A DNA stretch of 63,581 bases, counting the filler, from Hyphochytrium catenoides (Eukaryota; Protista; Hyphochytriomycota): assembly GCA_900088475.1 (NCBI GenBank). It is 11 parts of 11 records of this genome, joined end to end, with 100 filler letters (N's around TTAATTAATTAA, not from the genome) between each part and the next. Parts side by side here need not be neighbours in the genome. Positions count along the whole stretch, not along the records: positions 24,204 to 47,457 come from FLMG01001993.1; 10 more parts are not named here. One strand, 5' to 3'. Within the stretch, counting starts at the first letter, position 1, and every line of letters begins with the position of its first letter. A model generated the notes under the pieces. It searched no databases. It saw only the letters and a list, made by a program, of their open reading frames with translations, and had not been told where the DNA came from. A program made the translations under genes and the position numbers. Below are positions 24,094 through 47,262 of the stretch, piece after piece.

Positions 24094-27000
24094 TCCACTG
24101 CTTNNNNNNNNNNNNNNNNNNNNNNNNNNNNNNNNNNNNNNNNNNNNTTAATTAATTAANNNNNNNNNNNNNNNNNNNNNNNNNNNNNNNNNNNNNNNNN
24201 NNNATATCATGGTTTTCGGGGCTCCTCGGCTGAATCCAGACGCGCCCTAAGAAGTTTTAGAACTAGAACCTTTTTCCTGCTAGTGAAAGCTGAGAAGCAG
24301 GGCGGTGCTTCTCCTAAATAATCGATAGGAGCAGGTGCTAAAGAGTTCTTTCTTTACACAGGAGGCCAGTCCCTAGACGGAGAATGTGCTTGATGATTGA
24401 CCAATCAGAACGTAAACTGCTCTCATGCGTGGCCAATAGGATGGATGGGATTCTGTTTAGAACCACATCAACTGCAACAACGCGTACGGATAGGAAAAGC
24501 CGCAGGCAAGTCGGCTACAAACAAGCCTGTTAGAAGTTGCCAGCACTTTCTTTTATAAGAGCCAAGACAGCTTGCTTTGGAGACAGAGTTTTCACTCCCC
24601 GTTTGATTATTAGCGTTATTGTTGTCTGCAGGCAGCAAGCTGCGTCCTTCGGTAGTAAATAACCAAGAGTAGGGATATCGTCCTGGCTCCAGGTTGATCT
24701 TCTTTACTTGAAAAAAGGCTTTTTCAGCGTCGAAGACCTTCGGTGGAGCTACTGATGATGACGGCCATGGGGGCCTGGAGGACAGATGCACAGACACAGT
24801 TATATCTTCTTTCTCTTTTGCCTTCCCTTCTTCAAATTGGCTCTCCGGTCAATTTCTAACCACTGCCTTGAGATTTCATCAAGGGCAATGGTGACATCAA
24901 GAATAACTTTGCTTACTTAGTAGCATGCTCGTTTGACTGCTCAGCGAGGACAGCCACCACGCGCGGTCCTTGGCGGAGGGATCATATCATCTTTGGAAAT
25001 TGCAAATATGATAGGCGTTCGTTGCGTCTTTCTTGCTTGTGTCCCACAGAAGAGCTAATAGCACTAGTACAAATGAGGATTCTTGACATGTTACTTAACC
25101 TAACTTTGCGAAAAAGGATAACGGCGATAGATTAGTGCGACGGTGGTGGGGTGATGGAGAGCAAGAGGAGGGTAGAGGACAGGAAGGGGAAGTTATGGTG
25201 AAGGAGTGTGCTTGGTGCGACGAGTACGAGAGTAGTTGAGGATGGGACGATATATGGTGATGAGGAGGAGAGATGTCATCTAATGGAGGGCTATGATGTT
25301 ATACCTGATATGATGATGGCACTGACCAATAAATGTACAGAATGGGTGAAAAGTCCTCATTGCAGCTCATGCCCCGACTCTTCTAGGAGGACGAGCAGCT
25401 AGCAGCCACGCAAGAAGAAGCAGCAGCACGATGATCTTTGACCCAGCGCAAAGTTGTTCTAGAGTCACTATATACTCATCACCACTTACAGTGGTGGGCC
25501 GGCGAGAAGGCAGCGTAAGAGAGAAATCTGGGCGAAGCTGCCACAAGTACCATCACCATTACTATTTGCTGCCTAGTTGTGACAGTGACAGGAGCGATAG
25601 ACCAAAAGACGATCCGAGCGGGACCTGGGATCGGGACACGAACGCTTCTTCCAAGTCAGCGGCCGGCAAAGAGGAGGACGAGAGTAGAAAACAAAGTTAC
25701 TCTAAAAAAAAAGCTACTCTAGAAGCAACAAAGTGAACGTAACATTCCCTTTGTTGCCTTTTATCGTTTCTCTTTATGGAGAAGCCAGCTGGAGTCACAC
25801 GTAAAATATAGTACTACTGCTTTACTAGAAATATCCCAAAATGCTTCTAAGCGGAACACAAGCAAGCAGACGAACCCCGCAGCTATCTTTCCTATTCCCA
25901 AGGGTACGTAAACTTTTAAAGTAGAAGAGGACCATCGTGACTCGCTGTTGTTGGTGGTGCTGAAGAATGCCAGTAGCAAGTGATGACTATAATAAGTAGC
26001 TACCGGTACTACGTAAAGGACCCTACTACTATTAATGTTGGAGGAGATGAGAAGAAAAGACGACTACAATTATCTTCACAGGCATACAACGTCCCCAGAC
26101 CTAATGCTAGGGAAGAATGAGTAAGAATGTATTCGGCCGAGAAGGCTACTTATCACTCATCAGACCCTCCGCCACATCATTCAACGATAGTCCAGCTGCT
26201 GTTTCCTACCTAGAAGAATATTTCTTCCGTCTCCAAGAGAAGGACGCCACCCAAAACCAACAACAAAAGTAGGTTGTCATCATTATGGCAAGCAATGACC
26301 CAAACTAAGGCTGCTAAAGACGAAGCAACCAACCGAGAGTAGTAGCCTACTAGAGAGAGAGAGGACAGACAAAGATCCAAGCTTTTCTGATTGTTGAGAT
26401 AAAAGGATGCAGAATGGAGACGGAAGTACGAGATCTTCTACACCCAGCTTATCACCTGCGATATAATCTCCCAGCTCTGTGAGGAGCAGGACAAACCACC
26501 GTTGATGACGTGAGAGAGATGCTACGCAGGACCAAAGCGGCCCCCACAAAAAAAGAGAAGCTTTCTTGTATGTGGTGGTGCACTGATGACGCCAATGGTT
26601 GGCCCGCTTGTTGCTTCCACTCCTTCCTTCTATGTCGAGCTCACACTATCTCGTACCTTACATCCTTTTGCCTCTCGAAGGGACGGGCTTCCTTCCTCCC
26701 CCTCCTCCTTCTTTCCCCTCTCTCTCTCTCTCTCTNNNNNNNNNNNNNNNNNNCTGTCTCTCTGTCTCTCTCTCTGTCTCTCTGTCTCTCTGTCTCTCTC
26801 TCTGTCTCTCTGTCTCTCTCGTCTCTCTCTGTTTTTCTCTTTCTCTCTTCTGGTTGTCGCCATCCCTGGACATGATGGCATATCTTTTGTGTGGGGACCG
26901 GACAGGGGGAAAAGAAGCGAAAGAGACACCCCCCATCCAAAGCGTATTTTGCAGTTTCAGGTGGGGATGCTGAAGTGTCACAGGTGCAACTCAAAGGCAG

Positions 27001-28229
27001 AATCTACAGTTTGAAAGTGGAAAAAGGAGTCTGGGTTGTTGCCCTTTTTGGCGTTACATCTTTGGACTCACAGCCCGTTGGATTTCAGGTGGGAAGCTTT
27101 CATCTCCCAGAAAGATTCATTCTTTGTTCTTTGATGGCTTAGATACATGAAGAATTCAAGTATCTTTCCAATATTCCTCTTATGAAGAACAAAGCGGGTG
27201 ATGGCTGGATAGTGACGACTTACACAGCGTGAGCGAGGGGAGGACACAGAGACAGAGAGGGGAGTAGAGAAACAGAGAGGGGAGTTGAGAGACAGAGTAA
27301 GGAACGAAAGACGAACTGAGTGTAGAAAGAATTGGAGAGAGGAGAAGGAATTGAGAGAGAGGGGCTAGGGAGACAAGAGATATGTAGAGAGGAGTAAGCA
27401 GATAGAGAGATGGAAGGAGGACCAAACGCCGGAGAGAAACAGAAAGAGAGAGAAGGAGAGAGAAGAGAGAGACACACAGAGAGAGAGACGACAGAGAAAA
27501 AGAGAGAGGGAGAGAGGGAGAGAGAGGGAAAACTAAAGAAAGAAAGAATGAGAACGAGACAGAGAACGAGACAGAGAAAGAAAGAAAGAAAGAGGGAGTG
27601 AGAGAAAGAAAGAGAGAGAGAGATGGGGAGAGAGAGGGGGAGAGAGACAGNNNNNNNNNNNNNNNNNNNNNNNNNNNNNNNNNNNNNNNNNNNNNNNNNN
27701 NNNNNNNNNNNNNNNNNNNNNNNNNNNNNNNNNNNNNNNGCTCTGGAGGGAAGAAAGTTGGGGCCTGCAACAGCGCGGACGGAGGGGGAACAGAGACAGG
27801 ATGTAGCACACGAGAGGAGAGAGAGAGAGAGAGAAAGAGAGAGAGATGGCCAAGAGCGCAGTAGCACCGGATAAGGAAGAGAGAAAGGAGTTCAAGGCAT
27901 GCAAGTCTCTCTCTTTCCCTCAAAAAATAAGGAAGCGGCCAGCCGTCATCGCTCCTGTTAAAGCTAGCTGCCGTTCAAAGAGACCGAGAGAAAGCCTTGT
28001 AGAGCTTCGCCAAAGACATTAAGATAGCAGCGTTGAACGCGGTCACTCTGTCAACGAGTGAAAGCGAGCCTAATCAATTCTAATAAGTGACGAATGCTCT
28101 GACGTTCTAGATGCGCGGGAAGAAGCAGAAAGAGAAAGTGCTCCAGGAAGAGAGAGGATAGTTCTAGAAGAGTTTAGATCTCTCTCTCTTTCTCTCTCTC
28201 TCTCTGTGTGGTCTCTGGCTATCGACGTG

Positions 28230-29725
28230 ATGGCAGACTCAAAAGCAGACTTTGAGACAGCCTTTGAGCTGGTAGTGGAGCGAAGGGAAGCCCCGCTACC
28301 GCCTCTAGAGCCTAAACAAGTAACTGTCCGAGAGACAGAGCCAAGCCAAACCTTTACCAGGCCCAGAGTGAACCTTGGAGGCTCACGATGGCGCCGTCTA
28401 CAGCCATTTGCTCGTCCTGTGGCTTGGGATCTGGAGGGCGGTGGACATAGAGAGACAATGAGTGGTAGTAGGGTGGTGGACAGGGAAAGCTCTTTCTCTG
28501 GTGGGTTCCTGGTGAAAGAAGAAGTGCGAGAGGCGATTATGAAAGAGTATCAGGTAGAGCATGCTTCCCTCTCTTGCTATCACTCTTCCCTTCTTCTTTA
28601 TTATTGCCGCCGCCATTTCTACATATATATGACCGTCTTTCTCCCGTGTTTCCCTGCGACTCCCTGGCAGCTCCCTTCTCCTCTCTTATTCCTGGGCCAG
28701 TCTTGTCCTGCTCTTCTCTCGTTCTCCCATTAAGCCCGTCTTTTTCTTCTCTAGCTCTCTCTTAATGGACGGCCGCTCTAAACGCCCCTAACCCTCTCGC
28801 GCTCCCATAGACGCTAAAAACGCATTGGTTGACCTTGAGGTTCTTGGATCCAAAGGAAGAAGCAAAGTACCAGCGGCAGAGCAACCAGAACCTCTTCCAG
28901 CCCTTAATAACTCACATCCTTCTGGCAGTGGTGACAGTCGTGCACATCGCCTTCGTAGAGCTCAGGCAGCTTCTTGGCGGCGATCACTGGCATGTCGCCT
29001 ATGCCGTCGCTTTTCCATTAGTTATCCCGATGATTATCTTCCTTCCAGACTTCCGGCAGTATTGGAAGCTCTCTTTTGCGCTTCTTACGGCTTGCCAGGT
29101 AAGATAGATCAATATAAAGGGCTTGCCGGGAGACAGAGCGAGAGAGGCACTAAGAAGGAAAGACAGTACTGGACCTCCAACCCTTGCTTGCACCTTCATC
29201 TTTTTCCCATCAAGTGATTGCAAGTGAGGGAGCTCTCTTACTTTGGCTTGAGAGTAGCCCTCCCTTTTCTCGTCCACCCTTTCCTCCTCCTGTCAGTGCC
29301 CACTCCGTCGTTCTCTTCACCCTCTCCCACGTTCATATCTCTTATACTCCCGTTATTCCTCCTACTTTTAGCGGTGCTCCTCGGTCCCGAGTACAGAAGT
29401 CAAACCTTTTTTAGCTGCGCTAGGGGGCTACATGTCTAGGCTAACACATTCGGCTTTGCTCTTGCTCTTTCTACAGATCGGCTTCTTAGGTGCTGGTATG
29501 AGAGAGTCACAAGCTGTCATTTTGACAGGCTTGCAGGGTATCTGCCAGTACTCCATCCAGACCTTCGATAACATCTGCAGGATAGCCAACCCGGACCCTG
29601 TGCTCAGGCAGTCAGCACTCATGCTTGGGATTTGTGTGCTGGCGATGTTTACTATCATTGATATCTCGATAGGGACAGCAGGTGATTCTTCAATAGTCAT
29701 CCTTCTTAGCTCTGTATATATCTTT

Positions 29726-29773
<48 letters not shown>

Positions 29774-31989
29774 TTCTCACTCTCTTTTTCTCCCGTATGC
29801 CTTCGCGGCACAGAATATAGTGTTTTGGATCCCTTTCCGTCATGTTAGACTGTTCCTCCCTCTTATCTCTTCATCTACTTCTATCAGCTCGTTATGGACT
29901 GCGCTTTTAGCTTCATCTTTGCCGTCAAAAGCTCCTATCTCCCAGTGATTGTTTATCTCCCCGTTCGTTATCCTCTCTGAAGGCTTGCGTGGCACTGTCG
30001 TCAGAAAGCTCCTGACCTATCCTTGCTTTCATACTTCTTCCTCTCTTGGACACTCTCTCTTTTTCTAGGAGGAGTGGACTTCATATATCTCGTCGCCGTC
30101 TTCCTCGTGTGTGGAGCCTTCAACTTAGTGCTGGTAGAGATGTATCAGGTGACGCCCGAGCCCTACACGTTCGCCATCATCTTCATCGGTCTAGTGATTA
30201 CACTGGGTCCCAGCCGGCTCTCAGAGACAAGATCCAGGCTGAACTATAACATTCAGCAAATTCTCTATAAGAGGCACAAAGAAGAGCAGAAAAAAAGAGA
30301 AGAGAGTCAGAAAGAGCAGGAGAAGCTTATCAAGCGGTTAAGAGGCTATGAGAACCCTAACGAAGAAGAGAAAGACGCCGTAGATAGGATCCTAGGGCAG
30401 AACCCCTCTCTGAATGCGTCACAAATTATGTTCAAGGACTTAGATTTTGAAAAGATCATCGGGGCGGGGAGCTTTGGAGAGGTCCTACTAGGCAACTATA
30501 CTGGGACCAAAGTGGCAGTAAAAAGGTTGCTGAGGCATAGAATCAACGAAGAATATCTTAGCAGTTTCGTGCAGGAGTTGATGCTTATCAACAAGCTAAG
30601 GCACCCCAACATTGTGCAGTAAGTGGAAGTAAGCGGCTGAAATGTAGAGAGAGAAAGGGCGGCGAAGAGAGAGAAGCGAAGAGAGATAGCCAAGAAAAGG
30701 GATGGACCTGACTGTTTGAGAAAATAGCTGCGTAGAAGCGGAAGCTAGCTTCCTCCGTGGAGACGACAGGAAGAAGTGAGGGACAGTAACAGTACCTCGA
30801 TTCCCTAGCATTCAAAGCTTCAAGGCCATGAGTCTTTCCCCGCGGTGGTGCTGATCCTCTTGCCTCTGTTTGTTTTCTCTCGCTTGTGCAGGTTTATTGG
30901 GGCTAGTTGGGACTCTATCTCTAACATCTGCATCGTCTTTGAGTACATGGAGAGAGGAAGCCTTAGAGAAGTTCTTTCAGTCTACGGCTCTGAAGCCGCT
31001 TTCTCCTGGGAAGACCCCTGTCTGCGGATGGCGATAGATATTACCAGGGGCTTAGCATATTTGCATTCACGGCACCCACCAGTCATTCATAGGTAAGCAG
31101 CCAATAATCAGTAGGTAGCTAAGTTTGAGCAACCTGGAGTCAGAGGAGCAGTGGCTAAGTGCAGTCAGCCTCTATGACGTCCCTAGCCAATAGCTACATT
31201 TGAACATTCTTATACTGACTGCAATGGTAGCCTGTGGCTTGCTCCCGAAGTTCACATAGCTCATATTCTTTGTCCCTGACGTCGCCTCCTTCCTCCCTTG
31301 CTTTAGAGATCTAAAGTCCGGCAATGTGCTCGTGAGCTCCACATTTGGGTGCAAAATAGCCGACTTTGGGCTGAGTAGGCACTGGACTGAAGAGGACACG
31401 ATGACTATCACGGGCAGTCCTCTGTGGTTTCCTCCTGGTAAGGCCCTTCCTTGATTTGCCACTGGTCAACTTTTCGCTCTGCTCTCTTAGTTCCCCCGCT
31501 TGCTTAGGGAATTCATTCTCACCTCTCCTCATTGCTGTGATGCCTCTCTACTATTTGAATCCCTCTTCGCTTTCTTCCGTCCTGCCTTGGTCCTGCCCTG
31601 GCTCTGTCTGAACGCGGCCCATACCTCGCCCTTTTTTCACAATAGAGATGATCCGGAGCGAGCGGTACACAGAGAAGGCAGATATGTACTCTTTCGGCGT
31701 CTTGCTCACTGAGCTGGACTCCAAGAAACTCCCCTATCACGACTTGATGAAGATCAATGGCACTAACCTCACCACCACGAAGTTGATGCACTTGGTGGCT
31801 TACTCGGGTCTGCGCCCGTCTCTGACTTCCTCGTGTCCGCTGGAGGTGAGGGAGCTCGTGGAAAGCTGCTTGGAGAGTGATCCCAGCGACAGGCCTTCCT
31901 CTCTAGAAGTGTTAAGCTCACTTCTTGAGATGATGCAGCAGAATGCCCTCAGGGTGGGAGAGTCTTTCACTTCCTCCTCTTCGGGGTAA
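28230..31989 (+). CDS. TKL (Raf-like) protein kinase with an N-terminal six-TM module and coiled coil (exons 28230-28553, 28811-29098, 29477-29681, 30069-30618, 30892-31092, 31307-31437, 31646-31989)
   Basis: All junctions are GT-AG and frame-consistent. Kinase motifs: IGAGSFGEV, VAVK, LRHPNIVQFIG, IHRDLKSGNVL, DFG, GSPLWFPPE, KADMYSFGVLLTELD. Six hydrophobic segments lie upstream. Confidence 0.93.
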
Positions 31990-38376: not shown

Positions 38377-41300
38377 ATGCTCTCAAGCGTATCCCGAAGG
38401 CTTGTTAACGCTCTTACTGGGCCTGCCATCAGGAGACCGCTGCTAAGGGCCTCCAACCCTGCTTTCGTCTCTTCTATCAAGCCATTTAACCAGGTAAAGC
38501 CTCCTAACCCCTTCCTTCCTAAGCGCCAGAAGAAGGCATAGTACATAGCGCCTCTACGTCAATCTGCCTGAGACTTCCGCTCTCTTGTGCTTCTCTCTCT
38601 TTCTCCTTGTCTCGGTCCCTCTCACTTTGGCTATTTGTTGCTCAATACTCATGTTTCCCGGGCGCTAGGCTTCGCAAAGGTGGCTAAGCGTGGCTCATCG
38701 CGACGAGAAGACGGCTGTTCTTATTGAGACGGAAGACGAGTCAGGTGGGACCATTTATGTTGACCTTCTCCTATTTTTCTCTCCTTCGTTTGTCTCCTGT
38801 GGTCTCTTCTTTCTGTGTGTGCTTGAATGGAAGCACTAGTCGGTCACCATAAGTCACTGGCCTTCAAGTTCCTTGCAGTTCCCTTGGCAGATCATGGTTG
38901 CTTACCTCGGCCTTTGCTGCTCGCCTTCCGTGTGGTCTCCCATCTCCCCCTGTTTTGGTCAGGAGCTTTGCAAGAAGCGCTTAAGTTCTTCTGGAAGCAC
39001 AATGTCAACATGACGCACATCGAGTCTCGTCCAGGAAGAGGAGATACCTACGCTTTCTATATAGATTTTGAGGGCAATACTCGCGATGAGAGAGTCAAGG
39101 CACTTCTAAAGGACCTTAAGGCTAACTGCCAGAACCTTATGATCATGGGAGAGAGACAGGGTAAGCATAGGACAGATGAAGGAGAGTGAAGCGCCAGAGT
39201 GCTTGAGGGTGATAACGAGGAGGGAGAGATGTGACTCCTATAGACTGGAAGAAAGAATGACAAGGTCTTTCTGATCCTGAATCGAACTTACGGTTCTGCC
39301 GTACGGCCCCGAGGCTGTCTCCATCTCGTCCAACTACACTTATTCACTCAGAGTTTCTGCTTCTGGAAGGTGCTAATCTGCTCTTTCATTTGTAAACAGT
39401 GCCATGGTTTCCGAGGAGAAAGGCGGACTTGGACACAGTTGCTGGACAGGTAATTATTGGATACGTTGCCCTGCTTTCCTTGCCGCTTTGGCTTTATTTG
39501 CTATCCACTTTTCCCGCTACCCACATATGACGCTGATCTCTTCGTTTTCTTTACAATTGGTGTCCTCTGCTCGACTCGATGTGTCTCGGTAGACCATGGA
39601 CGCAGGTGGAGAGCTATCTTCAGACCATCCAGGATTCAAGGTAAGACCAGCGTATATGCGGCCGCAAACGAAGTGAGATCTTGTTACCTCATGCATGTAC
39701 CGCCTAACATTCTCCTTATTCAACTAGGACCAAGAGTATCGCAAGCGTAGAGAAGAGCTGGCTGCCATTTCCAATACCTTTGAGATGGGGAAGCCGATCC
39801 CTCGGGTTACCTATACTGAAAGAGAGGTAATAACCCACAGCGAAAGAGAGATCATTAGTTATGGACAGAAAGCCCCAAGAAGAGTTGAATCCCTCGCGGG
39901 TCAGGGTTGTCCTTCTCCCTGCGCTATAACCTCAATCTGCGCTGACGATCTCGTCTTTGACTTCACCGGCTACCGTGCCCAGATTGCGACATGGCGTACA
40001 GTGTGGGAGAAGCTTATGCCCCTCATGGATCAGTACGCATGCAAGGAGTACAAGTACATTCTCCCGCTTATGAAGAGCGAGTGCGGGTATGCGCCGGATA
40101 ACATCCCCCAGGTCAAGACAATCATCAGCCTTGCACATTTCTCTTGCTAACTCTCTTGTCTTCTGTAGGCCGAAGATATCTCCAGATTCTTAAATGAATG
40201 CACAGGTAAGAGAGAGATACAGGTAGAGATAGCCGATGCCCGTCGTAAGAAGCTGGCGGTAGAGGAGTAACAGAAGAATTCACGGGAGTACAGTGAGAAT
40301 CACCAGGCTTCGGATCTGCTTCTCTTCCGCCCGACACACGGCTAGAGGCTTTTTGCGGGTGCCCTTGGTCTATTCTGCCCTTTCGTTCTTGTGAGGCATA
40401 CTGCTTCCCATTTTTTCTGTCTTCTTGCGCAATTCTTCTCTCTTTTCCTTATATGTTGGCTCAATGGCGACTCTCCTCTCCTTACAGGCTTCACTCTTCG
40501 CCCTGTGGGTGGGCTGCTATCGTCCCGTGACTTTCTAAATGGTCTGGCATTCCGCGTGTTCTTCTCCACGCAATACATCCGCCACCACTCGGTGCCGCTC
40601 TACACGCCAGAGCCCGATATCTGCCATGAACTTCTTGGACATGCTCCAATGTTTGCGGTGAGACAAGATGGCGCAGTTGTCTTGTCTCCATTTCCATTAG
40701 TTGTTATCCATGTGGCCGAGTCTGCTAGTGAACAATTATTACGCTTGCCGTCTAATTTTGTTATCTTGCCGCCTGGCTTGGTCGCGCCTTGCTGACCTTT
40801 GGAGTACAGGACCCGGACTTCGCGGACTTCTCGCATGAAATCGGGCTTGCATCCTTGGGGGCTTCAGATGAGGATATCCAGAAGCTGGCTACGGTGAGCA
40901 TATGAGGCCGTTAGAGAGAAGGTTTATCCAGTGGGAAAATGAAGCCAGGAGCGCGGCTTGAATATTGCCAAAGACAAATAGGCGTTTACCTTATAATCCG
41001 TCAGATAGGCTGAAGGAACAGAAGGCGTGACATAGCACCACTTTCCACGAGAAGGGAGAGACCAGAAAGAGAGAGAAGGGTAGAATACGGGGACACCTTG
41101 ACTGGACGCTTTCTGATCCCGCTCCAATATTCTCAGTGCTACTGGTTCTCGGTGGAGTTCGGACTCTGCCGTCAGGATGGTGCCCTGAAGGTGAGACTTA
41201 CGTTATAATTTTGACCTTATAGGCAAGGCTTGGGCCCCTCGAAATATTTGGAACTCACTTTGTACATACATCTCACCTTACGTCCCTTGCAGGCCTACGG

Positions 41301-42858: not shown

Positions 42859-45800
42859 TTAACCCTCAGACGTGTCGCCGGCCATAGGGTGGGTCTCTTC
42901 ATTCCCTTCGTTGAGCTCATGAACGAAGCCTTCCCCAATAATCTCGCTGCAGTTGAGACTATCTCTATAGTCCTCTATGAAGGAGAAGCGCTTGAATGTG
43001 TCCTCAGTTATCTGAGGGTTTGAGCGAGACGAGGGAGTGGCAAGCAAAAAGAAGGAGCGCTCCGATGGAGATGTAAACGCCTCTTTGGGATCCAAAGAGA
43101 GAAGTCGCGGGTCAAAGTACTGAGAATCCTCCCAATTCTGCGAGACAACGAAAGGCAGAAAGTCAGGAGAGATAGAAATCTGAGCTGGGATGTGTTGTTC
43201 CTTTCTTTTCTCTTCTTAGTTAAGTTTCCTCGATCTCTTTCCCGCCTCGCCCCTGCTATTTGCAACGTTTTCTCGCTAGTTCACCGCCATGTCCCGCTTC
43301 GCGATCGCAATTCATAAGAGGTTGCTGCAGTCTCCCCTTACCTGATCGGGCAGCCAGGGGGGTGGTAACTGCTTTCTTGATAGCTTCTCCCAGTTTATCA
43401 GAGAAAAGTAAGGCTGAGAAGTAATGGCAGAGAGGGAAGATCCCAAGCGCCGCTCTGGGTCCTTCACAAGGAACTTCTGCTCCCAGATAGCAGGACGCGA
43501 GGAAGATCATAGAGGAGAAGTCAAAGAGAAAGGAAATTGAGCGGGAAGGTACAGAGGAGCCAAAGGAAAGCAATATGAGTAAGGACGTGATAGTGCGTAA
43601 CGTTAACCTGCCATGATGATGACGAAGAGATGCTGGAAGATAACGTGCGGCACCTAAAAGTCCATGCACAGATGGGCCGATGACATAACGCTCATGCGAA
43701 GATCACTCATTAAAAGGGGAAAGTAGGCTGTGGCCCGAGCATGGTAGGAAGTAAATAGTACAAGGTGGAGAAACCAGAACTTCTACTCGCTTCCCAGGTC
43801 ATCTAAAGTATCCCTCTCTCCTCCCCTGCTCTTCCTCCAAACCATCTTCTCCGCGGACGATACCTTGATAATATCTCTTGTTAGGGAGTCAAGCTTGGGG
43901 TGAGCGGGGAAGGCTACGTCTTCTCTTTCTATCATCCGGTACATCACTTCCAAGTTCTTGTGGTGGAAGGGTCGTCGACCGAGGGACATTTCATAGATCA
44001 TGACACCTGAGGCATCGTGCAAGTCACCGAAAAGCGTGAGTGACAGGAATAATAGATTGAGCAGGATATAGAGGATAAGAGTCTAGAGACCTTGGGCATA
44101 GAAGATGCAATAATCTCCACTAGGGCGATTAGGTCATTGCCTGCCCTAGGCTGCCCGTCTACATCTAGAGGCGCGATAAGCCTTCAACCCTCATGTGTCC
44201 TAAACCTATATGCCGTTGCTTCAGGGAACACCTACCTAAACACCACCAGTCCACTGCGCTGCCATAACTTCTCTCTTTCTTTGGTTTCAATAGCTCGGGA
44301 GCCGTGTAAGCCGGTGAGCCTGCCAAAGTTCGTCCGCCCTCCTTGGCTGTACAATGGAGTTTAGCAAGACCAAAGTCCACCAGAGCGATATGACCCTCGG
44401 CATCAATCATGACGTTATCCGGTTTGAGATCCCTAAGAATGGAAGTCAGAACAACCAAGGGCTCGTCACTATGCCTAATGAAGACTTCGTATGCCTTATG
44501 ACAAGAGGTAAATGCGAAGAATAGTCGAAATGGAGAGGAAAAAGCTAGGCGTGATAACAGAGACCTCAAACAGAAGGTTAACAATCTCCAATTATTGCCC
44601 TGCATAGGTAGAATAAAGCCCGATGCTCATGCCGAGGAATTTGGCGCTACCTATAGCAGACTCCAAGCTGATGCAGGTGGTCGAGCGCCAATACTATCTC
44701 TGATGCATAGAACCGTACTCTCTCGCCATCCAGCGGCCTAGGTCCTTTCTCGGGGTGTAGGTGGCTGTAAAGGCTGCCACCGATGTAGAAATCCATTCCT
44801 AAGTACAGCTTGTTCGTTGTCTGGAAGGAGAAACTGCAGCCAAATAGCAGTCAGAGAAGCGAACTAGACTTATGGACGGGTAATCTGATGGATGTGCGAA
44901 GTGAAACAACTATCTTCACGTATCGGACTCCAACAATGAGGCGGTGCAAAGAAGAGAAAGGGTGAAGTGAAGCCGAGAGCGCGACCCTACCGCAGACTGG
45001 CTATAAAGGGGTGATTGACATCCCTAAGAATCTGCATCTCGGTCAGTGTGCCGCTTATATCATGCTTCGTCATCGAGGGTTTATCTAATATCTTGATGGC
45101 AAACATCTCTTTACTCTCAAGCTTGCGAGCCATTACGACCTAAGGTGTAGGAGGAACGGAAATTTACAACATGAACTAAGTAGCCAGTGGGCTAACTGGA
45201 GCCAGACCAGATGGCGAAGGTAAAGGCCAACCACTAACAACGTCCGAGATCCAGCAATGCCACATCAGGACGCAGGGCAAAGAGATGTTCGTATAACCCA
45301 GGGTGCAAAACGAAATCTTAGCTTTTCACTGCCGGAAACCCTTTATGTCTTAGAGGGAAAAAAGGAAAAGCATGTCACTACCCGGGACAGCATCAAATAG
45401 GCTACTGACTTAGTGCCGCAGAGCTAAGAGAAACAGAGAAAGAAGCTACTCGCACCGTTCCAAAGCCTCCTCTTCCCAGTACCCTGAAGATCTCGAAGTC
45501 ATGGATGGATAGGGCTTGGACTCTCTTCGTTCTGCAGGCGTAAGGGTCTACCTCATCATAGTCTTTATAGTACAAAGTCCTCAGATACTTCTCTTCGGTC
45601 AACATATTGAGACTCTCCACCCGTCCACCAGGGGTCAGAGACAGTTGGAATTCCATTCCCGACCGGAGACATACGGAGCGGCGAGGAAGACAGAGGCGGA
45701 GAGAAAGATGTGCGACACAGGCGTTTCCTGCTGCCTGTAAATGTCTGCAGTCCATACCGATGACCTCTATGTTCCGAAAGAAAGCGTTAAGGAGGAAGAA

Positions 45801-47262
45801 GAACCCCTCTTTCCCATGGTACTCTCCTCCAGTGAGATATCCCCAGTGGACGTTGGTCACAATAACGATATCACTACATACAACTGCACAATCAAAGAAA
45901 TGAAGCCTTTTAGCAGGCGAAGAAAGAGGATGAAGAATAAAGGAGGAAAGGCAGCCCTAACGGACTCAGAAAGTGCTTGAGACTGTGGGACAGGAAGATT
46001 GGACGGAGCTGGAGCTAGGGGAACAACCGGCCGCTCAACGCAATCCCGGAGCTAGGTTTGATTCTCAGACAAAAAAATAGAACGGGCGAGAAATCCCTTG
46101 TGCACGCGGGAAGAGTACGCGAGTAATGGGGGGAGAACAGAGACCAATGAAAGCAGAGAAGGGCAAACACACTAATGATATTGAACGACAAGTAGGCAAG
46201 CAAGATACACTCGTAGCATGACACGGAGGGTAAAGCGGAAAATATTGTGAGACAATCTCCAGAGAAAGACCCAAACGCGAGAGGTGGCCGTGCCGACCTT
46301 GAAACATATTGAGAACTTCTTCAATGGCCTGGGTGGTGCCCCAAGACGAGAGACAGAGCCTCTCAAACCTCTTGATAAATTCCTCTGCAGCCGCTCTAGT
46401 CCTAGCCGTTATGTCTTCTAGTTTACGAGTTGGCATAAGACTCCTGGAAGGAGCGCGAGGATGCACCGGCGCCATCTTATGCTTCTAAAACACCGATTGG
46501 ACTTAGACGTCAGGTATATAGACAGAACGAGAAGGCTGGAGAGATGTAAAGCCGCGTAGAGCGTGAGGCCAACCATGAGCAGCAGAGAAAGGTGAATGCG
46601 ACTATGGCAGTGAATGGGACACTGCTAGCTAGATGGAAGTGAAGACGTTCATACAAGAAGGTCGATCAAAAAGTCGAGGGCACACACTCTTCAGGACCAG
46701 TGCAGTCTTCAAGGATCACCTTTCGTATATCCTCGAAAGCGAGCCCTCTCCTGATCATTCTGACCCACATCATCTTGTCCATGTCGTACGCGGCTTTGAC
46801 ATGAAATTTGTCCCCATCCTGAGTTTCGATATCAAAGCACTCGTCTGTTTCCTCCCTCTCTAAGACTCTTCTTATAATAAACCCGCCTCGTGCTTGTCTT
46901 CGCTTTGCCTTCTCCTTAGAAAGATAGTCTGTGGCAACGTCATAAGACACCTAAAGAAAGTGGCGCCGAAGAAGAGGAAGGATTCTTGCCGCAGACAAAG
47001 ACAGGCAAGCTCAAACAATGGGGAGAAGAAAGATGGAGCTAGTAGCGAAAGCCTGGTGCAATGAGAGCTGGAGGCCAGAACCGAGGAAGTTGGGCAGAAG
47101 GGAGTACCTACAGGTCATCATGTTGCCCTTCAACAGGCAGTATCGTGGCCGCCAGGACTTGAAGAAGTTTCCCCTCTTCCATAGAGAGCCTTCCCACTCA
47201 ACGATGCGGGTATAACCCCCGTGGGAGCCTCGAAATAGACCATGAGTCTCAAGGCTGCGGGT
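42859..47262 (-). CDS. AGC-family (Akt/SGK-like) kinase with PH domain and SnoaL/NTF2-like domain; 5'-partial, multi-exon
   Basis: PH: [30 protein letters not shown]...DKMMWVRMI. Kinase: [61 protein letters not shown]-tail has the hydrophobic motif FKRFSF; stop is TAA. Confidence 0.93.

Follow-up and report, generated by a model that had tools for sequence, protein, structure and literature searches.

A six-helix membrane module, probably related to cyclase anchors, precedes a TKL kinase in Hyphochytrium catenoides

Can the membrane module of a nucleotide cyclase be coupled to a protein kinase? The question is raised by a gene at positions 28230–31989 (+ strand) of a 63,581-nucleotide stretch of DNA from Hyphochytrium catenoides (assembly GCA_900088475.1), hereafter the window, in which 11 parts of 11 records are joined end to end; the gene lies in the part from FLMG01001993.1. 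An initial annotation of this DNA had proposed a cyclase membrane module joined to a Raf-like kinase, as an undescribed class of receptor kinase. Our analysis indicates that the gene probably encodes a multi-pass, receptor-like Ser/Thr kinase of the TKL group, with a six-transmembrane (6TM) module followed by an intact kinase domain. The membrane part probably shares its fold, and probably also its ancestry, with the 6TM module located ahead of class III adenylyl cyclases and of ImcA, a bacterial diguanylate cyclase.

Joining exons from the sequence yields seven exons separated by GT-AG introns throughout, with an in-frame coding sequence of 2043 nt and a product of 680 amino acids (aa). Exon 1 (28230–28553) opens at the first ATG of its open reading frame (ORF), the predicted start, ends at a phase 0 GT donor and would encode a putative soluble N-terminal region of 108 aa. 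Exon 2 (28811–29098), whose first base is exactly where the feature was initially placed, carries a motif ahead of the first transmembrane (TM) helix (HWLTLRFLDPKEEAKYQ, residues 113–129; 28823–28873) that is conserved in the family described below and aligns with the adenylyl cyclase AC5. It is followed by TM1 (28901–28960), TM2 (28988–29047) and the first part of TM3 (29066–29098), placed by hydropathy and by alignment to a family hidden Markov model (HMM), in which the conserved W-K ahead of TM3 is also matched. Exon 3 (29477–29681) contains the remainder of TM3 (to 29500), an extracellular loop with two Cys (29501–29608) and TM4 (29609–29674). The uninterrupted exon 4 (30069–30618) encodes an (l)DF motif, TM5 (30077–30139), TM6 (30161–30214), the peptide SETRSRLNY (30221–30247), a charged helix to about 30349, the peptide EEEKDAVDRIL (30362–30394) and, from about 30437, the kinase N-lobe. 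The rest of the kinase, located by Pfam and motifs, is distributed over exon 5 (30892–31092; subdomains IV–VIa up to VIHR), exon 6 (31307–31437; HRDLKSGN catalytic loop, DFG and activation segment) and exon 7 (31646–31989; C-lobe, short tail and TAA stop), all exons lying on the + strand.

As TM5, TM6, the helix and the kinase N-lobe share the single frame of exon 4, the link between membrane part and kinase is independent of splicing and not a fusion artefact. Junctions 4/5, 5/6 and 6/7 recreate kinase motifs that are contiguous in intronless homologues (HPNIVQ/FIGAS, PPVIHR/DLKS and PLWFPPE/MIRSE, respectively, the slash marking the joint). The exon 3/4 junction is spanned collinearly by P0051, a soil-derived fragment of 102 aa which is 90% identical to the spliced product over the 40 residues aligned by the search, the rest being near-identical by eye. 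An alternative donor for exon 3 (29713/29714) was rejected, as it would put exon 4 out of frame and conflicts with P0051. Intronless homologues of 614–764 aa contain the whole architecture in one ORF, and for P0019, a homologue from a metagenome contig, a single ORF runs unbroken for 2001 nt; compared with these, the Hyphochytrium gene is intron-rich. Two contigs of a soil metatranscriptome are 90–95% alike over exon 4, without splice joints.

The introns of the gene are pyrimidine-rich on the sense strand, and GC and AT skew are negative across it, which resembles the account given in the Physarum genome paper. Parts of introns 5 and 6 (31146–31201 and 31456–31550) occur in one DNA run from the same organism (X2) as two versions, each at about half depth. 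These differ by several substitutions and small indels, with exons nearly unchanged, and suggest either heterozygosity or two strains. Contigs resembling 30031–30364 and 30730–31031 (exons 4 and 5), mostly at 90–98% and a few lower, were found in soil metagenomes and one soil metatranscriptome, suggesting that a close relative of the organism, or of the gene, lives in soil. Long TC/GA dinucleotide and related repeats, together with N runs (assembly gaps), lie upstream of the gene (26757–27846) and in intron 3 (29721–29792). Rfam gave no match in the analysed piece.

Hydropathy places six hydrophobic segments in the spliced product, at residues 139–158, 168–187, 194–212, 249–270, 276–296 and 304–321. 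All peptides quoted in the initial annotation are present in this product, and its account of a protein with six TM helices, not seven, and unlike a G protein-coupled receptor (GPCR) agrees with the hydropathy, with a six-TM model of a homologue and with the lack of any GPCR match in Pfam. The two-Cys loop it described between TM3 and TM4 is likewise confirmed, spanning 36 residues (213–248), whereas the other TM loops have 5–9. SETRSRLNY (residues 324–332) follows immediately after TM6. The 45 residues after TM6 include 14 K/R and the 30 before TM1 include five, a distribution that points to a topology with both termini inside the cell. When individual exons were searched with Pfam, the membrane exons were without any family match.

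The segment after TM6 leads in frame directly into an intact kinase, as had been proposed, and the catalytic motifs are complete (GAGSFGEV at residue 404, VAVK at 421, HRDLKSGN at 522, DFG at 542 and PPE at 565). Pfam assigns exons 4–7 to Pkinase or PK_Tyr_Ser-Thr, the GxGxxG motif is present, and NCBI names a homologue TKL/DRK. This supports the TKL group, though not the narrower label Raf-like: the nearest matches of a close homologue outside the family are MLK-type MAP3Ks. In a full-length model of a homologue (predicted local distance difference test, pLDDT, 77.7), TM6 extends as a 50-residue helix and is followed by a second helix with an EK.aV...L motif and then by kinase strand 1. No cyclase-transducer element was detected after the TM6 helix, and neither in the gene nor in the close family does a Guanylate_cyc or related domain follow it, Pkinase and PK_Tyr_Ser-Thr being the only domains downstream. 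Hence, the protein is not a cyclase and the shared part is the membrane module only, while the coupling between module and kinase is family-specific.

A search with exon 4 against 1.84 billion representative proteins revealed many proteins of 600–880 aa that match it collinearly from TM5 to the kinase N-lobe, with 28–35% identity in full-length homologues. Their N-terminal side has a pre-TM1 F..p.lE.eY, six TM helices, W-K before TM3 and (l)DF between TM4 and TM5, with a Cys-containing and often N-x-S/T-rich TM3–TM4 loop; on the C-terminal side, sDr..R.nF follows TM6 and is succeeded by an EN..L...L helix, EK.aV...L and the TKL kinase. Named members are a Saprolegnia parasitica 'TKL/DRK protein kinase', an Achlya hypogyna protein kinase and an Aphanomyces stellatus protein, and most of the remainder are metagenome proteins. 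In the ESM Atlas, a cluster that comprises 398 kinase proteins, most of them from Oomycota, has a TM-score of 0.79 to the module model described below. A family HMM built from 20 family modules, with the window sequence excluded, scores the membrane module of this gene at 65.4 bits (E 5e-19), whereas the best of 2000 shuffles reaches 8.4 bits. Membership of the oomycete-type 6TM-TKL family is therefore secure, as judged by sequence. A word-indexed homologue search with the membrane module of another member (P0061) alone returned one relative only.

Variants of this architecture were also observed. Members of subfamily A2 (P0037, P0043, P0054, P0040 and P0045) have two tandem TKL kinases and a shorter 6TM module, the flanking motifs of which look even more cyclase-like (LSLQFLDANLEKEY ... 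SRMDFLLTKRLEDE; F.D/s..lE.eY and R.dFLL..RL..EN). In an hhalign comparison of A2 with the main family (A1), the match was confined to TM6 and the motif that follows it (probability 95.8), and the A2 profile found no match in the PDB. In P0004, a protein of 1244 aa from a metagenome (Logan), the 6TM module with FSLRFRNAKLEREY and RRDRMAFLMIRRLRKEN is followed by kinase, Guanylate_cyc and kinase domains. A search with its cyclase domain returned fungal Cyr1-type and soluble bacterial cyclases only, the fungal Cyr1-type being closest. This kinase-cyclase-kinase core recalls an amplified amoebozoan family known from Physarum and from Acanthamoeba; it stands on a hexahelical module in P0004, whereas the Acanthamoeba proteins have a single TM helix. 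P0062 (876 aa) has a C-terminal cyclic-nucleotide-binding domain after the 6TM-kinase (PF00027, E 2e-19), which by its sequence is a further tie of the module to cyclic-nucleotide signalling.

The solved anchors of class III adenylyl cyclases (AC5, 8sl3/8sl4; AC8, 8buz; AC9, 6r3q/7pd4; Mycobacterium tuberculosis Rv1625c/Cya, 7yzi/7yzk) resemble the module in having six TM helices with short loops, a pre-TM1 helix of the F..D..LE..Y type and a long cytosolic helix, continuous with TM6, that opens with E...R..F. When the family profile was compared with all PDB sequences, the first four ranks were taken by Zinc transporter 8 (E 0.027), AC5 (E 0.11), ImcA (E 0.25) and AC8 (E 0.42). The pre-TM1 motif aligns in register with both halves of human AC5 (SKKFPSDKLERLYQRYFF, TFREPDLEKKYSKQV), the AC5 counterparts of HWLTLRFLDPKEEAKYQ being SKKFPSDKLERLYQ and TFREPDLEKKY, and the post-TM6 motif aligns with AC5 ESTARLDFLW. 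In the same profile alignment, ImcA presents E..E..F before TM1 and D...R..F after TM6. The cyclase-type motifs reported on either side of the bundle by the initial annotation are thus conserved throughout the family and in register with both AC5 halves. Language-model neighbours include AC_N clusters (scores 0.86–0.91), which serve as a lead only. The 6TM-TKL protein differs from these anchors in its kinase output, without the transducer element of cyclases, in having one 6TM unit versus the 2x6TM pseudoheterodimer of animal adenylyl cyclases (Rv1625c is a single-unit 6TM cyclase), and in its longer, Cys-bearing TM3–TM4 loop.

For structural comparison, an AlphaFold2 model was generated for residues 39–354 of P0019 (P0019:39-354), a homologue from the seemingly closest subgroup, using a 24-row family alignment that included the exons of this gene. 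The model (pLDDT 86.4, predicted template-modelling score 0.80) has six TM helices. In a Foldseek search of the PDB, TM-score and probability singled out AC8 and ImcA, and the candidates were aligned with VIA-align. ImcA scored highest (Z 15.4; root mean square deviation, rmsd, 3.0 over 211 residues), followed by AC5 (Z 12.5 and 12.3, the first with rmsd 3.6 over 213), AC9 (Z 12.0 and 11.0), AC8 (Z 11.4) and Rv1625c (Z 9.7; 9.7–10.2 across searches). The next natural protein was ZnT8 (Z 7.9, rmsd 5.5). GPCR structures matched poorly, with Z at most 7.2, rmsd 7–10 and a Foldseek TM-score of about 0.2. A Foldseek-free scan of 48,161 PDB representatives again gave ImcA, AC5, AC9 and Rv1625c as the top natural membrane proteins, interleaved only with de novo designed bundles of high rmsd or short coverage. 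The fold match to solved adenylyl cyclase anchors is collinear (Z 9.7–12.5 over 127–226 residues). In the AC5 alignment, model residues 8–290 correspond to AC5 215–433, a stretch that runs from the pre-TM1 helix through TM1–TM6 to where the helical domain begins. The register is that of the profile alignment, with profile position 7 at AC5 218 and model residue 8 at AC5 215.

Searches beyond the PDB place the module in wider company. A shape search of the ESM Atlas retrieved bacterial 6TM Guanylate_cyc clusters (TM-score 0.62–0.63, rmsd 2.8–3.0) and chordate AC9 (TM-score 0.62), and neighbours by shape or feature include clusters with 6TM_PilS and MASE8. Matches in the AFDB comprise adenylate cyclases, GGDEF proteins, Stigmatella adenylate cyclase 1 and phosphodiesterases (PDEs), namely an Allomyces PDE and Plasmodium PDE beta and gamma. 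The PDE neighbours (Q8I6Z7, A0A077YBL0 and A0A0L0SI35) have probability 1.0 and TM-scores of 0.42–0.53, and the model comparison suggests that a hexahelical module may also precede eukaryotic PDEs. The fold is not cyclase-specific, being found also on bacterial GGDEF/EAL, HD-GYP and PilS-type proteins and on the Plasmodium and Allomyces PDEs. The term cyclase membrane module is therefore apt in part: among natural proteins the homologue fold matches all solved membrane adenylyl cyclases best, except for ImcA, and it is also that of other signalling proteins. The module is more aptly described as a hexahelical signalling unit of wide occurrence, with a eukaryotic protein kinase as its output in this case.

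Several observations weigh against a cyclase-type module in this gene. The profile similarity to AC5, ImcA and AC8 is below statistical significance (E 0.11–0.42), and the Foldseek matches have E above 0.2. No Pfam AC_N, MASE (MASE2/6/7/8/11), 6TM_PilS or GPCR match was obtained in 24 family modules at E up to 10, and the lack of AC_N and MASE matches counts here. Likeness to cyclase anchors, as initially postulated, is thus clearest in structure (Z 9.7–12.5), suggestive but short of significance in the profile comparison and absent from the Pfam results. The modelled protein is a homologue, with 8–19% identity between P0019 and the membrane-module pieces of this gene, and the best structural match is a diguanylate cyclase, ImcA, not an adenylyl cyclase. 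Helical bundles may reach Z of about 13 with this aligner by arrangement alone. The post-TM6 helix is E/K/R-rich, and a simple heptad count gave weak periodicity with no clear coiled-coil register, so that the sequence does not indicate a coiled-coil dimer. The dimerising, cyclase-type coiled coil ending in E+LL that the initial annotation envisaged after TM6 is accordingly not borne out. For the organism, DNA runs but no RNA run were listed, and exon 1 with its start codon finds no homologue among the family matches.

The main rival reads the six helices as a mere membrane anchor that resembles cyclases through convergent packing, with no common ancestry or receptor role and with the kinase regulated from the cytosol. 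The non-significant sequence similarity speaks for this account. It also gains from the de novo designed helical bundles that reach Z 10–11 against the model, and from the limited match even between the two kinase-linked subfamilies, confined to TM6 and the motif after it. However, those bundles have rmsd 6.5–7 or cover only about 100 residues, whereas solved membrane cyclases and ImcA outrank other natural membrane proteins in two independent searches, with rmsd 3.0–3.7 over >200 residues; 6TM folds of other kinds, ZnT for example, get no higher than Z of about 7.8. Furthermore, the flanking cytosolic motifs lie outside the bundle and yet are shared and in register, so that packing does not explain them, and conserved residues within the module ((l)DF, W-K before TM3 and the loop Cys) argue against a passive anchor. 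We consider convergence unlikely, although of the alternatives it deserves the most attention. Common ancestry with the cyclase anchors, as against analogy, appears quite probable.

Much less probable is that the protein belongs to the GPCR-TKL 'bigrams', in which a 7TM GPCR domain precedes a C-terminal TKL kinase. These proteins of oomycetes and amoebozoans (PMC5784254, PMC6033456) do share the N-terminal multi-pass sensor, the kinase group, the C-terminal position of the kinase and overlapping taxa. A 7TM GPCR signature, often accompanied by a DEP domain, characterises the bigrams, whereas the present protein has six hydrophobic segments and no DEP domain, the homologue model shows six TM helices, no GPCR Pfam family matches the exons or the family, and GPCR structures fit poorly. 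The fold and the flanking motifs likewise set the module apart from single-pass receptor kinases, as had been suggested. Least probable of all is a gene-model artefact in which a membrane-protein gene and a kinase gene were wrongly joined: only DNA runs exist for the organism and exon 1 is unsupported, but exon 4 holds both parts in one frame, intronless homologues have the whole architecture and P0051 bridges exons 3 and 4.

With a hexahelical module of probable shared ancestry as the preferred reading, several known systems invite comparison. Pseudomonas aeruginosa ImcA (8wcn; PMC10904736) has the same six-TM fold and flanking motifs. It is homodimeric, and its TM domain is required for activity (PMC10904736). 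It differs in being bacterial, in its GGDEF output without a kinase and in its regulation via the partner IsmP. The 6TM histidine kinases of the CqsS/LqsS and PilS types and the MASE-type modules are also hexahelical sensors helix-coupled to a cytosolic enzyme; unlike the present family, which has no Pfam MASE or 6TM_PilS match, they occur in prokaryotes and act through histidine kinases or nucleotide cyclases. When swapped in for a cyclase anchor, the 6TM receptor of CqsS is a functional substitute and can regulate the cyclase (PMC4821796). Bacterial class III cyclases have been described as monomers that need homodimerisation for activity (PMC4821796), and mammalian adenylyl cyclase membrane domains have been reported as lipid receptors (PMC11606603).

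The closest known proteins are the oomycete multi-pass TKLs of Saprolegnia, Achlya and Aphanomyces, which belong to the same family and have the architecture and motifs of the Hyphochytrium gene. The Phytophthora infestans kinome contains 99 TM-containing TKLs with one to nine TM helices (PMC3019232). Such kinome surveys count TM helices, without describing the membrane module or relating it to cyclase anchors, and a cross-kingdom survey of TM kinases lists topologies without a 6TM cyclase-type class. Apart from CqsS, the 6TM modules gathered in the literature on cyclase anchors all stand upstream of cyclase domains (PMC4821796). A full-text literature search, not exhaustive in coverage, turned up no account of a Ser/Thr kinase with a 6TM module of the cyclase or ImcA type. 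The proposed undescribed class is thus new in one respect only: its members are already in databases, as 'protein kinase' only, multi-pass TKLs have been counted and the fold is known, while a cyclase-like membrane module on such kinases was not noted in the literature found and the combination has gone unrecognised.

Two other sets of exons were noted in the window. Those at 38827–40795 (+ strand) encode an aromatic amino acid hydroxylase of the biopterin-dependent type, which has an ACT domain at its N-terminus (Pfam ACT, Biopterin_H). Exons at 44165–45860 (– strand) encode another protein kinase (Pkinase), which looks AGC-like and is unrelated to the 6TM family.

How might the 6TM-TKL protein work? 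The module would consist of an amphipathic pre-TM1 helix with F..D..lE..Y and six tightly packed helices, TM6 extending into a long cytosolic helix. This helix would open with (D/E)...R..F/Y and lead via a short second helix (EK.AV...L) into the kinase, which would take the place of the cyclase. Two protomers may pair through the membrane bundles and the post-TM6 helices. Ligand binding within the bundle, or at the extracellular loop with its Cys, could then shift the TM6 and post-TM6 helices, altering the relative arrangement of the kinase domains and thus their trans-autophosphorylation. Such a homodimeric receptor-kinase mechanism is proposed by analogy with ImcA, Rv1625c and the work on cyclase anchors as lipid or ligand receptors, and we advance it tentatively, at somewhat less than even chances.

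It is still debated whether the hexahelical domains of adenylyl cyclases serve as anchors or as receptors (PMC4821796, PMC11606603). If the same fold and flanking motifs are wired to a kinase in a large eukaryotic family, this would be evolutionary evidence for a portable sensor and transmitter module. The finding names a structural class for hundreds of uncharacterised multi-pass oomycete TKLs, including those of plant and fish pathogens, that have so far only been counted in kinomes, and sets the hexahelical TKLs apart from the 7TM GPCR-TKL bigrams, for which they might be mistaken. It is possible, though on balance doubtful, that hexahelical receptor kinases form a class widespread among protists, which would include oomycetes, this organism and eukaryotes known from metagenomes, perhaps with relatives in haptophytes and amoebozoans. 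The sensor of these kinases would be a true homologue of cyclase anchors, of the 6TM parts of apicomplexan PDEs and of bacterial GGDEF and cyclase sensors, and would bind a lipid or other small ligand in the bundle, signalling through the TM6 helix to a dimeric Ser/Thr kinase. If so, the cyclase 'anchor' would be an ancient portable receptor module, and these kinases would offer an independent and easily assayed read-out of its debated receptor function.

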